From positions 62,001 through 126,000 of the IMG/VR virus record IMGVR_UViG_3300035670_000008: DNA of 64,000 nucleotides; one strand, given 5' to 3'. This document shows, in pieces, positions 29,641 to 60,392 of the stretch (position 1 is its first letter; every line of letters starts with the position of its first letter). The position numbers were made by a program, and so were the translations under genes. Below the pieces are notes generated by a model that did not search any database, was not told the origin of the DNA, and saw only the letters and a program-made list of their open reading frames with translations.

Positions 29641-29812
29641 TGGAAAATAGAAGAACTAATAGCAGTATAGCTTAGTAGTCGGGGCTGGGGTATGGGTGGA
29701 AGGGGGCTTAAAAGGAGGCTAAAAAACATTAAAGTAGAAATGGATTAGTCCATTTCTACTTCAGTAGCGCAAAAGAGATTAAGTTTATAGGAATAACTGC
29801 TAGTTTTCGGTA

Positions 29813-29827
29813 GGTATAGGGGAAAAT
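29813..29827 (+). repeat. 15-bp direct repeat, copy 1 (GGTATAGGGGAAAAT)
   Basis: Identical to 60083-60097. Confidence 0.85.
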
Positions 29828-29923
29828 TAGTACAGCTCCGCGCATACCCCAAACCCGCTCTGTGAACCACCTTCAGCTATTATATATATAGCACACTATA
29901 CTACTCAACACAACATCATACAT

Positions 29924-30029
29924 CACACACACACACACACACACACACACACACACACACACACACACACACACACACACACACACACACACACACACAC
30001 ACACACACACACACACACACACACACACA
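29924..30029. repeat. (CA)53 perfect dinucleotide tract
   Basis: 106 bp of alternating CA. Confidence 0.97.
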
Positions 30030-30363
30030 TGCAGCTCCGAGGGGATGGAGCCTGGTGTAATTTATGCGGCTGTTAGTCCCAATTTTGTCAACAACAGCCT
30101 AACATTAGCAATAGCTTGTTGACTAGTCATTCTCAATAAATAGGTCAAAAACCACTATTTGATTAAAAAAGACGGTTTGTTATTGACATTCACTCTCAAT
30201 AAGGGCATAAAAAGTACTTATTTTAGCCAGTTGGGGGAGGAAAAGGGGGTGGTTGGGGCAGGCTTTGGGGGGTTTTGCTAAAGGTCGGTGTTTTATAGGG
30301 GTCAAAAACAGACTTTGGGTAGTAAAAAGGGGGTAACTAGCGGAGCTAGCTACCTATCCTTAT

Positions 30364-31539
30364 TTATATGGCCAGGAACAGTAACAGGAGGGGTCGATTC
30401 TCTTGGTCGGGGATAACGACCGTAATAGCCAGCCCGATGAGGGCATAGATGAAAGCGACCCCACCTAGGAGTATCATCCCTTGGATGAGCATACCTACAC
30501 TACAGCAAGCCGCGGCTAGGCGCTTCTGGCGTTGGGTAGGCACGGGCAGGGGCTTCTCTGGGTTGACGAAGAGGATATGCAGCATTACGGCGCCTATGCA
30601 GACTGCAATTCCAATACAAGCGGCAGCGGCGGGGTTATTCAGGTCACTGGGTTTAGTAGTTACCCAGTTCTGCATTAATTCCCCCAGCATGGTCTTGCCG
30701 GTCATCGTTCCCCAGAGTAGGATAGCGCCTACTGACCAGCCCTCTAGGAAGGCTTCCTGGTGTCCGTAGGCTATTTGAGTCTGCTGGGCTCCGATGCACC
30801 GGCTAGCCGTAGCTACGCTTAAGCCAGGGCTACACCAGACGATGAACCACGACCAGCAAGACCACCAGATACCAGCTAACCCCGGGTCGAAGGCGTTCTC
30901 TTCGGGGTCGAAGTTGGAGCTTTTGTGGCGGGCGCCACTATTCTGAGGTCTAGCTCGAAAGCCGGAGGCGATCGCTAGCCCGAGGATGGTAGCTACGGCG
31001 GGGTTGAAGTCTCCCCCGGTTACTTGAGTAATGAGCCGGTTGACGAAGGCTAAGAGTAACCCAGTACCCCCAACGCGGGTGACTGCCTCGAAGGACGACC
31101 GGTTGGGGGACTCCCCGTTCTCTACGACCCAGGCTAGGGTCAGGAGAATGGGAATGTTCACGTACCAGGGTATCTGAAAGGGAGCCGAGGGTATCTTGTA
31201 GGCGATTAGGAAGCCGCCCAGATACATAACAAACCTAGCCAGCATGTATATCTTGGTTAGGTTCGCCCGGTTGGGTATAGGAGACTGAACGGCTGGGTCG
31301 GCAGCGATGTAACTGTATTGGAAGTCGCTGGAGATATCCTGCATCTCTAAGGCAACGGCTCCCATACCGGCGGCTAGATACATCGCAAAGCCGAGTAGAG
31401 GGTTCTCTAAGGCGGCTCCGAGTATCCCGGCGGTATATTTGTTAACTAAGCCTAGCCGACCCGCTAGGTAGGTTATAACGGTGATTACAACGCAGATAGT
31501 AACTAATACGGCGTTGAACCCAGGATACTGGTCGCTCAT
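30364..31539 (-). CDS. Polytopic membrane protein
   Basis: Roughly 10 hydrophobic segments. Confidence 0.75.
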   Translation of the reverse strand: MSDQYPGFNAVLVTICVVITVITYLAGRLGLVNKYTAGILGAALENPLLGFAMYLAAGMGAVALEMQDISSDFQYSYIAADPAVQSPIPNRANLTKIYMLARFVMYLGGFLIAYKIPSAPFQIPWYVNIPILLTLAWVVENGESPNRSSFEAVTRVGGTGLLLAFVNRLITQVTGGDFNPAVATILGLAIASGFRARPQNSGARHKSSNFDPEENAFDPGLAGIWWSCWSWFIVWCSPGLSVATASRCIGAQQTQIAYGHQEAFLEGWSVGAILLWGTMTGKTMLGELMQNWVTTKPSDLNNPAAAACIGIAVCIGAVMLHILFVNPEKPLPVPTQRQKRLAAACCSVGMLIQGMILLGGVAFIYALIGLAITVVIPDQENRPLLLLFLAI

Positions 31540-31559
31540 GGTAAGAGTCCTCTTATAAT

Positions 31560-31910
31560 TTAATGACAGCTAATGAGGTCTTCTACATCCATTGGGTTGC
31601 CTCCTGGTCTGACTAAGCAGGTGTGGGTGGAGGTCTTTAAGGTTGTAGAGCCCTCGGGGGCGACGATGTCTGCTCGGATTAATTCACCCTCAACTATCAG
31701 CGCATCTTGTACCTCTAATCCCACAGCGCCAGAGTAGCGGGCTGGGTCTTCAGAGTGATAGCGGGTTCCATTAATAGATACTGAGTCAGACGACACGCCG
31801 GTGATTGTCCCGTAGGGGATTCGTTCGTAGTTGGCGGTGCAGCTACTTAATCCGCCCGCTAAGCCGATTATTAGCAGCGGGGCGGTAATAAACCGTAAAT
31901 GTTTCTGCAT
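31560..31910 (-). CDS. Putative lipoprotein
   Basis: Signal peptide ending in lipobox-like LSSC. Confidence 0.6.
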   Translation of the reverse strand: MQKHLRFITAPLLIIGLAGGLSSCTANYERIPYGTITGVSSDSVSINGTRYHSEDPARYSGAVGLEVQDALIVEGELIRADIVAPEGSTTLKTSTHTCLVRPGGNPMDVEDLISCH

Positions 31911-32097
31911 ATTTAGGCATCCCTTCTATATCGCATGGCTTGCCTTGAATGATAAGACAGTTCTCCCCACAGCGTTCAGGATTGGTTACCTGGACGGATG
32001 TGGGGGTCATGTCATCAAAACTCCCGTAGCCACCCTTAGCTAGGCTAAAGGCGGCTAGGTTCAAGGCGACGGTTATGGAGAATAGGACTACACGCAT
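31843..32097 (-). CDS. Small secreted/membrane protein
   Basis: N-terminal signal-like segment. Confidence 0.5.
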   Translation of the reverse strand: MRVVLFSITVALNLAAFSLAKGGYGSFDDMTPTSVQVTNPERCGENCLIIQGKPCDIEGMPKYAETFTVYYRPAANNRLSGRIK

Positions 32098-32120
32098 AAG
32101 GCTCTACCATTCGGCTTGCC

Positions 32121-58755: not shown

Positions 58756-58956
58756 TTACTTGGACTGCTCTTGGTTAGCAGTCCACACCAGGTAAACCCC
58801 GGTGATGACTGCGCCATTGACGGCAATCCCAGAGAGTACAAGTAAGGCCCAAAGAATGAGTCCACGCCAATCGAAGGGCGTAAACCCTTCGAGTTGGCGG
58901 TACTCAGACTTGGATAACTTTTTCATAGTTCTCCGTGGGTTTAACAATACAGGCAC
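58756..58956 (-). CDS. Small membrane protein (start probably 58926)
   Basis: Hydrophobic segment; GGAG RBS. Confidence 0.6.
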   Translation of the reverse strand: MPVLLNPRRTMKKLSKSEYRQLEGFTPFDWRGLILWALLVLSGIAVNGAVITGVYLVWTANQEQSK

Positions 58957-59115
58957 CCCTGCCTGGAGCTTATATAGACACCTCGACCTACTACGCTTCG
59001 TAGCGCACGTAGCGGTTGTCTAGCTCAATAAAAAACCCACCCCCGTAAGGGAGTGGGTGGTACGTAGCTTGTTTATACTCCCCTACGTTAGGAGTGTGGG
59101 TAAGGCCTTAGTCTA

Positions 59116-59430
59116 CTAAGGCTTTACCCAACCATCACTTTGCCAGAATCGGAGTTCCGATTCTGTGTCCTTTTTAATGCAGTACCCATGGGCGAATGGG
59201 TCCTCCCCCAGAGCAAGCAAAAATGAAATGTGCGCGCCTTCGCGCACATTTTCCTCTTTGTGGGTTTCGATGTAGACCTCGCGGTCTATGTTTGACACCC
59301 ACTGTTCGGGGCTAACCCCCGCACACTCAGCCGCCAGGAGGACGTTTGCCCCCAACGACAGACGATATAAATCCACTTCTTTTTCCACCTCTTGCGAGGT
59401 GGAGAACATGTTTATTTTGGGTTGGTACAT
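59116..59430 (-). CDS. Hypothetical protein
   Basis: AAGGA RBS; upstream part of the track ORF overlaps a terminator. Confidence 0.6.
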   Translation of the reverse strand: MYQPKINMFSTSQEVEKEVDLYRLSLGANVLLAAECAGVSPEQWVSNIDREVYIETHKEENVREGAHISFLLALGEDPFAHGYCIKKDTESELRFWQSDGWVKP

Positions 59431-59566
59431 GATGATCTTTTCCTTTTGACTAACGGTGAATGGGTTGTTAGACCCAATAAAAAACCCACCCCTTGCGGAG
59501 TGGGTAGGTAGTGCAGGTATTATTAACGTCCCCCTGCATAGGGACGAGCAAGAGCTTAGAGGGGGT

Positions 59567-59707
59567 TCAGCACCCACCCCCTAGCTGCTTGCAGATGCTG
59601 TCTACTCGCTGAGCAGGATTAACCTGCTCTTGGAGCTTCGGAGCCATGGCCCCGAAAGATGAGAGAAGAATAGCAGCAAACACTACGAGAATAGAGAAAC
59701 GTACCAT
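59567..59707 (-). CDS. Small secreted/membrane peptide (46 aa, not in track)
   Basis: MVRFSILVVFAAILLSSFGAMA signal-like start; own motif and terminator unit. Confidence 0.55.
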   Translation of the reverse strand: MVRFSILVVFAAILLSSFGAMAPKLQEQVNPAQRVDSICKQLGGGC

Positions 59708-59814
59708 GATAGAAACACAGCGGTGTGAAAGGTATTGCCGCTGTCCTCACTAAATAAAAAACCCCTCTTGCGAGGGGTCTGTAGAGGTCATCATCTACAA
59801 GAGGGGTCTTTTAC

Positions 59815-59973
59815 TTAGAAGCGGGAAGGTAAGGTCACCCTTACCATCCCGATGAGCGAGTCCGCCTTATCGAATGCGCGCGCCCGTAGGCGCACGCAAA
59901 CCAAACAATCCGCCAGCTGGGCTTGGAGCCCAGCCTGGCGGGTGAGCTTGCGGGCGGTACGAATCTTAGACAT
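59815..59973 (-). CDS. Small basic peptide (52 aa, not in track)
   Basis: AGGA RBS; leader motif shared with the 55036 gene. Confidence 0.5.
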   Translation of the reverse strand: MSKIRTARKLTRQAGLQAQLADCLVCVRLRARAFDKADSLIGMVRVTLPSRF

Positions 59974-60082
59974 AATTGTCCTGGCACTCACGTAGTTCCC
60001 ACGAAGCCGTTAGTTCTGATAAGCCCGGTCTAGCTTATGACTTAGCCGTTACCAAACCCGGAATTTCTCAATTCCGAGGCGG

Positions 60083-60097
60083 GGTATAGGGGAAAAT
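60083..60097 (+). repeat. 15-bp direct repeat, copy 2
   Basis: Identical to 29813-29827; part of inverted repeat GGGGTATAGG/CCTATACCCC (60081-60158). Confidence 0.85.
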
Positions 60098-60392
60098 CAC
60101 ATAATTGGTCTCATTTAGAACCGCGAGTAATTTTTGTTGGAGCTCCGTCCTATACCCCCTGGTTATTACTGGAGGGGAGGTTCGTCTAGAATTATTCGTC
60201 AAATGCTGAAAGTCTTATGCTGCAATCGTTCTAGCGATTTCGTTAGCTCCCCACCTAGGCGAACACTCCGCGTAAACAAAAGAAAACCCCGCTGGCGTTC
60301 ATACATCAGCGGGGTTTTCCTAAGACCTACTAGTAAGCTCTTTGTAGGGTTTGTTATAGTAGGTATATTGTTAACCTTCTCTATCGTACAAT

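Follow-up and report, generated by a model that had tools for sequence, protein, structure and literature searches.

A conserved non-coding cassette in the two largest intergenic regions of an uncultured phage genome and its possible role as a promoter-proximal RNA signal

Phage lambda carries two nut sites, nutL and nutR. A nut site of the lambda type consists of a boxA followed by a 15-nucleotide (nt) boxB hairpin, lies between the promoter and the first terminator in the early transcript, and is served by an N-like, arginine-rich antiterminator. The put RNA of phage HK022, comprising two stem-loops in about 70 nt, acts in cis on RNA polymerase without a protein. Among the systems by which phages bring in polymerases of their own, the promoters of the N4 virion polymerase are formed by a stem of 5-7 bp with a 3-nt loop, and the giant two-barrel, beta-prime-like polymerases include gp66 of crAss-like phages as well as the polymerase fused to the tape measure protein of P23-45. 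To our knowledge, the known phage antitermination and leader elements all come from well-studied model phages, and we know of nothing on early gene control in the uncultured jumbo-phage clade considered here. Long intergenic regions of the crAss-like phage phi14:2 give rise to non-coding RNAs (ncRNAs) of unknown role, at transcript levels above those of most genes (doi 10.1101/2020.03.07.982082). In this study, we investigated a stretch of 64,000 nt, hereafter the window, which represents bases 62,001-126,000 of the 216,563-bp IMG/VR virus record IMGVR_UViG_3300035670_000008, and in which the 15-mer GGTATAGGGGAAAAT is found on the plus strand at 29813-29827 (site 1) and 60083-60097 (site 2). 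Coordinates are those of the window unless stated.

A sequence-only reading of the window had taken these two copies for matching elements that bracket a 30-kb, early-type block of minus-strand genes. Our data make the motif look like part of a conserved non-coding cassette that heads minus-strand units, and not like the boundary of a mobile or packaged module. A full copy at site 2 heads the leftward, terminator-rich block, and a shortened copy at site 1 heads what would be the next transcription unit. The explanation that we favour, tentatively and at somewhat less than even confidence, is that the cassette is a promoter-proximal, cis-acting RNA signal, possibly of a nut- or put-like antitermination kind. 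The cassette would be transcribed together with the minus-strand genes and would act as RNA near the promoter; RNA polymerase that has passed it, alone or with a phage factor such as a basic 52-amino-acid (aa) protein encoded just behind site 2, would then read through later intrinsic terminators. In a milder version, the 5' stem-loop and the leader that follows it would stabilise the transcript or set the translation of the first gene.

The full unit and its leader at site 2

On re-scanning, the series of short elements given by the sequence-only reading was borne out in full. The motif GGTATAGGGGAAAAT is followed by AGCTCCG, 6 nt on at site 1 and 43 nt on at site 2, with ATACCCC 3 or 4 nt past AGCTCCG at both sites, and GGGGTAT/ATACCCC inverted repeats were located at 29687/29844 (site 1) and 60081/60152 (site 2), the latter being a perfect 10-bp stem of 60081-60090 with 60149-60158. 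That the motif might be common elsewhere had been named as the finding that would speak against its significance, and here it occurs exactly twice in the whole record, with no further copy when one mismatch is allowed; two copies per genome, as with nutL and nutR of lambda, is one of the grounds for favouring an RNA signal. Genome-wide, 90 pairs of direct repeats of at least 15 nt were counted, and the GGTATAGGGGAAAAT pair is among the five that carry a colinear chain of two more shared 7-mers, the other four lying in paralogous genes. The repeat is no chance match. Sites 1 and 2 also occupy the two largest intergenic regions of the genome, IG1 (29641-30363) and IG2 (59578-60392), and the genes flanking both sites lie predominantly on the minus strand.

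A protein-coding nature of the element (shared peptide VIFPYTP) was rejected, because the gaps of 6 and 43 nt put the two sites in different frames and the units hold in-frame stops. A tRNA-derived origin of the unit, for which there were 10 nt common to the start of a tRNA-Ala and the start of the unit, was dropped as a short coincidence. When IMG/VR was scanned for GGTATAGGGGAAAAT, all of the 58 loci obtained were unrelated coding or chance matches except L050/G001. The match in G001 (L072 3778-3816) covers 34 of 39 nt of window 60079-60117, which is the 3' half of the site 2 unit, and includes an exact run of 22 nt; it sits within a 306-aa open reading frame (ORF), in sense orientation, on a 21.9-kb viral fragment of 34% GC without proteins common to this phage. 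By estimate the match was judged too good for chance, and it is unexplained.

The phage record is classed as linear and estimated to be about 96% complete, without end repeats, and the standard genetic code was used throughout, no alternative code being applied. Samples holding this phage are JGI 3300035670, ENA ERZ4201046, SRR13298164 and SRR11566349. Neither boundary region had a blastn match among GenBank phages, and the phage is without a close GenBank relative; searching IMG/VR with the flanking proteins gave distant relatives only, or none. Through the 391-aa protein beside site 1 and a giant protein encoded within the block, two syntenic uncultured phages were reached. The first is a 121-kb JGI contig, covered by loci L077 and L084, with L085 as a Logan variant, and the second is the NCBI assembly GCA_013565735.1, in two contigs, covered by loci L080/L083 and L088. 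Scans with patterns of the leader and unit core returned one true relative (L088) and three chance matches from metagenomes, no match or chance coding matches from IMG/VR, and no match from species genomes.

At site 2 stands a full copy (60054-60161, minus strand) of a non-coding unit of about 105 nt, recognized by alignment with the units of L084 and L088, by a profile and by predicted folds. Units are about 103-113 nt long on the gene-sense strand, which is the minus strand of the window, and run from 5' to 3' through a G-rich 5' arm, an invariant CGGAGCT, an A/T-rich middle of 35-40 nt that exists in two subtypes, a conserved stretch closing with the invariant CCTATACC (CCTATACCCCGCC in full units), and hairpin 2. 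For the site 2 unit, folding of the gene-sense strand predicts two hairpins: hairpin 1, with the perfect 10-bp base described above and a variable A/T-rich top, and hairpin 2 at 60056-60080. On the opposite strand, the 3' arm of hairpin 1 reads as GGTATAGGGGAAAAT. An nhmmer profile built from five full units, one of this phage and four from L084 and L088, recovered site 2 at E 4e-29, with site 2 itself included in the profile, as the sole significant match in the genome. At the equivalent position, L084/L085 and L088 each display two full tandem units and one partial unit (2.5), so that the copy number across the three phages is 1 (here) to 2.5. Their arrays are flanked on one side by a divergent gene, which in L088 starts about 30 nt away, and on the other by the first small ORF of the leftward block.

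The unit is followed by a near-invariant leader (59974-60053, minus strand) of about 80 nt, which bridges the last unit and the start (ribosome-binding site and ATG) of the first ORF. Within the unit-leader region, L084 matches this phage without a difference over 74 consecutive nt, and 58 nt in a row are the same in all three phages. Unit and leader together are the best DNA match to the 32-kb locus of the relative (91.5% over 142 nt), and the proteins shared between L084 and this phage are 28-75% identical. That the most conserved DNA is non-coding, next to proteins of such identity, is a main reason for favouring an RNA signal, and since the conservation exceeds 100 nt, a structured RNA would fit better than a protein site of 15-20 bp. 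The layout argues in the same direction: an intrinsic-terminator-like hairpin (60282-60319, minus strand; perfect 13-bp arms and a T-rich run) just upstream of the unit, then the unit, the leader and the ribosome-binding site with its ATG, an order repeated in L084, L085 and L088. From its position, this terminator probably insulates the block against read-through from the structural operon on the right.

The first ORF past the leader (59815-59973, minus strand; the gene call agrees with that of the source) encodes 52 aa with a basic N-terminus. It was found in this phage only, inserted ahead of a 46-aa ORF, and has its own terminator at 59759-59780. The 46-aa ORF (59567-59707, minus strand), with a signal-peptide-like start and a terminator at 59484-59505, is the first gene behind the leader in both relatives; the end of this gene and its terminator have 88% DNA identity to L084, and a word search with the 46-aa peptide gave no candidates. 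L084 likewise has a terminator-like hairpin behind its first small gene, and the terminator scan of L088 listed none there. To the right of site 2 lie the 3' end of a conserved tail-fibre-like structural operon and divergent genes, and the 7.5 kb from a conserved 86-aa gene (61292-61552) to the giant gene are otherwise non-syntenic with L084. Because of this loss of synteny and of the operon on its right, site 2 is a real module junction.

With regard to the strand on which the unit acts, RNAalifold run on the five full units predicted 31 pairs in the gene-sense (minus) orientation against 11 in the reverse. When 155 pair cells were scored, 134 paired in the minus orientation against 116 in the plus, a count to be read in the knowledge that the structure scored had been predicted on the minus strand itself. 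In hairpin 2, wobbles of the U-G and G-U kind, together with changes from A-U to G-U, are valid solely in minus-strand RNA; on the other strand, the wobbles become A-C mismatches. The pairing counts and the wobbles of hairpin 2 both favour the gene-sense strand, and hence a signal read as RNA.

The main rival is a control region at the DNA level, in which the units would be tandem promoters or operators between divergent genes and site 1 a second, weak site; the readers would be host RNA polymerase with the phage sigma factor, the giant polymerase of the phage, or regulators of the AP2 or helix-turn-helix (HTH) type. We consider it rather unlikely. The array does stand between divergent genes in all three phages, its tandem copy number of 1 to 2.5 is usual of promoter and operator arrays, the pairing partner of the 3' core CCTATACC drifts, with the core itself and its flanks staying invariant, and among the phage's own products are a sigma70-family protein (22900-23907) and a probable RNA polymerase module. 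However, no sigma70-like consensus was seen inside any unit of the window, L084 or L088, near-invariance over more than 100 nt goes well past the length of a promoter or operator, and the wobble pairs favour gene-sense RNA. Nor do the units show the stem of 5-7 bp and loop of 3 nt that characterise the promoters of the N4 virion polymerase, this being a comparison with a general layout and not one of homology.

The shortened copy at site 1 and the block between the sites

At site 1, alignment to the full units disclosed a truncated unit (29808-29851, minus strand), in which hairpin 1 is reduced to its 5' 17 nt and its 3' 22 nt; the 37-nt middle and hairpin 2 are missing. The parts retained are both sides of the base of hairpin 1, with 15, 7 and 7 nt identical. 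Against the profile of five full units, site 1 obtained E 4.4, and E 1e-3 once it had been added to the profile. It is a short, lineage-specific partial copy. Upstream of it, a predicted sigma70-like promoter (29879-29908, minus strand; TTGAGT, an 18-nt spacer and TATAAT, 10 of 12 matches, a consensus match only) has the end of its -10 hexamer 28 nt from the truncated unit, with the presumed start about 20 nt away. The HU-like protein gene (29326-29640) is preceded by a strong intrinsic-terminator-like hairpin (29730-29763, minus strand; 15 pairs and a T-run), about 45 nt downstream of the unit. Behind this terminator come the genes for HU, for a PIN-PhoH fusion and for a glycosyltransferase, all encoded by the phage, and this order of promoter-like site, truncated unit, terminator and genes is a further ground for favouring the RNA signal. 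The truncated unit and the terminator are enclosed by a long-range stem of 21 nt (29680-29700, no strand being specified), 81% complementary to its partner at 29837-29857, with fold z-scores of about -5 on both strands.

Comparatively, the gene order at site 1 is alike in this phage, in L077/L084 and in L080: the 391-aa gene, the large intergenic region, HU, PIN-PhoH, the glycosyltransferase, the sigma factor and an Ig-repeat protein. The synteny break in relatives that the sequence-only reading had proposed as a check was therefore looked for and did not appear, the gene order being continuous across site 1 and the block being present in all. The GGTATAGGGGAAAAT element was not found in the intergenic region of L077 or L080 equivalent to IG1; a different G5/C5 hairpin stands at its position. 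IG1 and the equivalent regions of the relatives have in common a terminator after the 391-aa gene. A short motif with CCCCTATAAAA occurs in IG1 and L077, with only a partial match in L080, and TTATTGA/TCAATAA palindromes are common to IG1 and L077. A (CA)53 microsatellite (29924-30029, strand unspecified) is located between the last terminator of the block and the site 1 promoter; its slot is occupied by about nine repeats of an 11-mer in L077 (about 11480-11575) and by TG-rich remnants in L080 (about 11340-11370), so that this conserved control region contains a slot for simple repeats that is hypervariable. A contig of SRR11566349 has a stated length that would put its end about 357 nt past the 391-aa gene, inside the repeat.

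These comparisons bear on the possibility that site 2 alone is functional and that site 1 is a decaying fragment of an ectopic duplication or gene conversion in one lineage, its bracketing of the block being accidental. The missing motif in L077 and L080, the loss of the 37-nt middle and of hairpin 2, and the E of 4.4 against the full-unit profile are all what such a relic would display. Against it, decay would have had to spare precisely both sides of the hairpin 1 base, and the remnant sits neatly between a promoter-like site and a strong terminator, within the 21-nt long-range stem. We regard this account as unlikely.

The same spacing of promoter-like site and terminator would fit a small RNA gene at site 1, giving a trans-acting small RNA (sRNA) of about 150 nt (29879-29908 to 29730-29763), with abundant early ncRNAs coming from site 2, and the transcribed long intergenic regions of phi14:2 offer a precedent (doi 10.1101/2020.03.07.982082). 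At site 2, however, no terminator separates the unit from the first ORF, and the leader directly meets the ribosome-binding site; no target complementarity was found, and the sole outside match is the unexplained one in G001. Small RNA genes acting in trans are thus considered improbable.

Between the two sites, the minus-strand units delimited by terminators that the sequence-only reading had described were confirmed by counting: 43 terminator-like hairpins were found inside the block against about 16 expected. The excess was noticed at 29-34.5 kb (9 against 4.8), 34.5-41.1 kb (15 against 6.6) and 56.5-61.5 kb (19 against 5.0), and there was no enrichment to the left of site 1 (22-29.7 kb; 8 against 6.8). 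Block terminators often carry the tail TTTTT(A/G)CTAC. Enrichment inside the block only is another reason for preferring the RNA signal. As to the claim that the sites bound this block, site 2 does stand at its head and site 1 at its tail, and the bracket as such is not conserved, the relatives keeping the array at site 2 and missing the motif at their site 1 position. A repeated 5'-untranslated-region cassette was also observed on the minus strand of the block, at 56097-56158 and 56944-57026, with a weaker variant near 58660 and a counterpart at 7667-7750 of L084. It consists of a terminator tail, CCCTAGACAGCCGG...CCGG.CTAGGG and, immediately thereafter, the start codons of small genes; its DNA is 82-90% identical to the L084 counterpart, and the proteins diverge.

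That the sites are terminal-repeat or packaging boundaries, injection-stop signals, excising or inverting recombination sites, or an iteron replication origin is, in our judgement, very improbable. Direct repeats do flank a slightly GC-richer, terminator-rich block, and both intergenic regions are rich in repeats, with the (CA)53 tract and palindromes. An independent ENA contig (NODE_239, 29,566 bp, coverage 33.8), near-identical to 30277-59851 in its two readable end stretches, breaks inside both intergenic regions, and a Logan contig also ends at 30277. Yet the shared sequence amounts to 15+7+7 nt instead of hundreds of bases, and the sites are internal, at 91.8 and 122.1 kb of a 216.6-kb record without end repeats, which tells against the terminal-repeat and packaging interpretation. 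The recombination-site interpretation fared no better: no recombinase was detected among the block proteins scanned with Pfam, the sites show no core-type layout, and the genome harbors a single tyrosine recombinase (5251-6393), located 24 kb away from site 1, and none of the serine type. In three relatives the gene order continues through site 1, and none of them has the bracket. The ENA contig was rejected as an excised circle, as its ends mismatch the repeats, lying 464 and 232 nt inside them, one of them at a hairpin, as would be expected of assembly breaks; the contig ends at 30277 and 59851 likely stem from repeats, hairpins or strain variation. A replication origin at the sites was likewise rejected, the cumulative GC skew having its extremes near 4 kb and 108 kb, at neither site. 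Annotation of the 30-kb block as a module that is mobile or packaged on its own should consequently be avoided.

Several observations weigh against the RNA signal that we favour. The five full units, all from three phages, are no independent samples, and the leader varies too little for covariation to be seen. Since the 3' arm of hairpin 1, CCTATACC, is invariant and its 5' arm drifts without compensation, the pattern suggests a constraint that is sequence-specific rather than purely structural, and which could act on the DNA. Fold z-scores are modest, at about -2, for the unit with its leader and for the putative site 1 RNA. Inspection by eye of the leader and of the region of site 1 brought up no boxA- or boxB-like motif, and permissive Rfam scans (E up to 5) of both intergenic regions yielded sub-threshold matches only, none overlapping the element; at the gathering threshold, the sole Rfam match in the whole window is tRNA-Ala (6485-6557). 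The copy at site 1, with its E of 4.4 and its absence from the relatives, may be a relic, and the 52-aa ORF matches no Pfam or PHROG family.

The giant gene and further features of the genome

The block encodes a giant ORF of 4,239 aa (41066-53785, minus strand), which is annotated here with a probable beta-prime-like RNA polymerase module, a kinase-like P-loop and a C-terminal Dda/Pif1-like helicase. The module surrounds the motif GDNDGD (residues 2667-2672, about 45770-45787), which is invariant in the three closest homologues. An exhaustive search with residues 2430-3070 found 24 relatives, 21 of them 1,663-4,532 aa long (the exceptions being 440, 546 and 865 aa), and in an alignment of 20 sequences GDxDGD (G238, D239, D241, G242, D243) and an upstream RxP..G are near-invariant. 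With this alignment, AlphaFold modelled the same residues at pLDDT 74.7 and pTM 0.74. Foldseek gave nothing at E <=0.001 for this model, all matches having E >0.05, and the top 50 rows were nearly all RNA polymerase largest subunits. VIA-align returned Z of 8.6-9.1 over 160-320 residues, the 50 listed rows being all RNA polymerase complexes, mostly the largest-subunit chain, with its own warning that a Z of about 8 can be non-specific. Sequence searches of the giant ORF against Pfam, PHROGs and the PDB found no polymerase match, only the kinase-like P-loop and the Dda/Pif1-like helicase; the ESM Atlas gave no usable match for the central part, and residues 1720-2919, folded with a 3-sequence alignment, were unusable (pLDDT 30.6). 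On the motif and this modelled fold, the giant ORF probably holds a beta-prime-like RNA polymerase module. The sequence-only statement that the block contains the RNA polymerase is therefore plausible through GDxDGD and a fold Z of about 9, and, given the warning on middling Z values, is not proven.

The giant protein also displays an HExxH zincin-like motif (about 890-900), a polynucleotide-kinase-like P-loop domain and a stretch resembling the PHROG 'GTP-binding domain' (the residue ranges listed for these extra features are about 890-900, 670-800 and 3560-3740), and its homologue P0005 has a NADAR domain. A second giant ORF, of 6,943 aa, is found on the plus strand at 178373-199204 of the genome (116373-137204 in window numbering, thus beyond the window).

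Regarding possible regulators, two plus-strand genes, 60393-61226 and 37223-38032, are paralogous in their N-terminal parts. The former, at the divergent head of the block, carries a C-terminal AP2 domain, and the latter, inside the block, carries an HTH; both products are candidate block regulators. Far to the left, the gene of the tyrosine integrase (5251-6393, minus strand) adjoins the tRNA-Ala (about 6485-6558, plus strand; anticodon TGC, with a G3:U70 pair), an arrangement that points to a temperate phage with an attachment site close to the tRNA. The sequence TGCTTTTTT, often with GCTTTC ahead, is present in 13 copies in the genome, all on the plus strand and some within minus-strand genes (for example, window 4020, 14359, 32759, 42602 and 50747); it may represent lysine-rich coding of the minus strand or a plus-strand signal. 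Repeated palindromes of the GACGAACGGTTCGTC type are dispersed over the genome (window 26626, 43881 and others).

Comparison with described systems

Should the cassette act in cis as an RNA signal, it would stand as a new family beside the few known promoter-proximal antitermination and leader elements of phages. The leader (59974-60053) marks the start of the early-type block in the clade, and offers a compact object for reporter assays. A broader proposal, speculative and decidedly unlikely as a whole, would be that a small clade of uncultured phages of about 200 kb uses a new, tandemly repeatable RNA cassette with an invariant leader as a processive antitermination or polymerase-loading signal for the terminator-studded block that encodes their own giant, beta-prime-like polymerase; the cassette may act on that polymerase rather than on the host enzyme, with the 52-aa protein taking part and with a second, minimal copy controlling the HU/PhoH cluster.

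In comparison with tandem early promoters, such as A1-A3 of T7 and the early hairpin promoters of N4, a repeated, conserved non-coding unit also heads an early-type block here, and the phage probably has a giant polymerase of its own. The units differ from these promoters in that they have no sigma70-like consensus and no N4 stem-loop, and in that their conservation goes beyond promoter length. With the ncRNAs of phi14:2 the locus shares long intergenic regions in a phage with a giant polymerase protein of the DxDGD type; those of phi14:2 are expressed, whereas the cassette is a feature of sequence, and no sequence relation between them is claimed. The 4,239-aa ORF resembles the polymerases of the gp66 and P23-45 type in its size, in the catalytic DxDGD conserved across the family, with GDxDGD near-invariant in 20 relatives, and in its Z of about 9 over 200-300 residues, a likeness that rests on the beta-prime-like region, the second barrel not having been sought. 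It differs from them by its lack of a Pfam, PHROG or PDB polymerase match, and by the addition of kinase-like and helicase domains.

The nearest comparison is with lambda nut and HK022 put (PMC2724277, PMC9378689). Unlike these, the cassette has no Rfam or other sequence similarity to them and no boxA with a 15-nt boxB by eye or by Rfam, its unit is larger (about 105 nt plus a leader of about 80 nt) and stands in tandem in the relatives, its second copy is truncated and lineage-specific, and it is known from sequence. The candidate for a cognate N-like protein is the 52-aa ORF, with its basic N-terminus, which belongs to no recognised family and is missing in the relatives. What the cassette shares with nut and put is two copies per genome, hairpins on the gene-sense strand, a position downstream of a promoter region and ahead of intrinsic terminators and genes, and an operon studded with terminators, with a small basic protein encoded just downstream of site 2. 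The layout of both sites would fit the placement typical of nut sites, the promoters being consensus matches at best.

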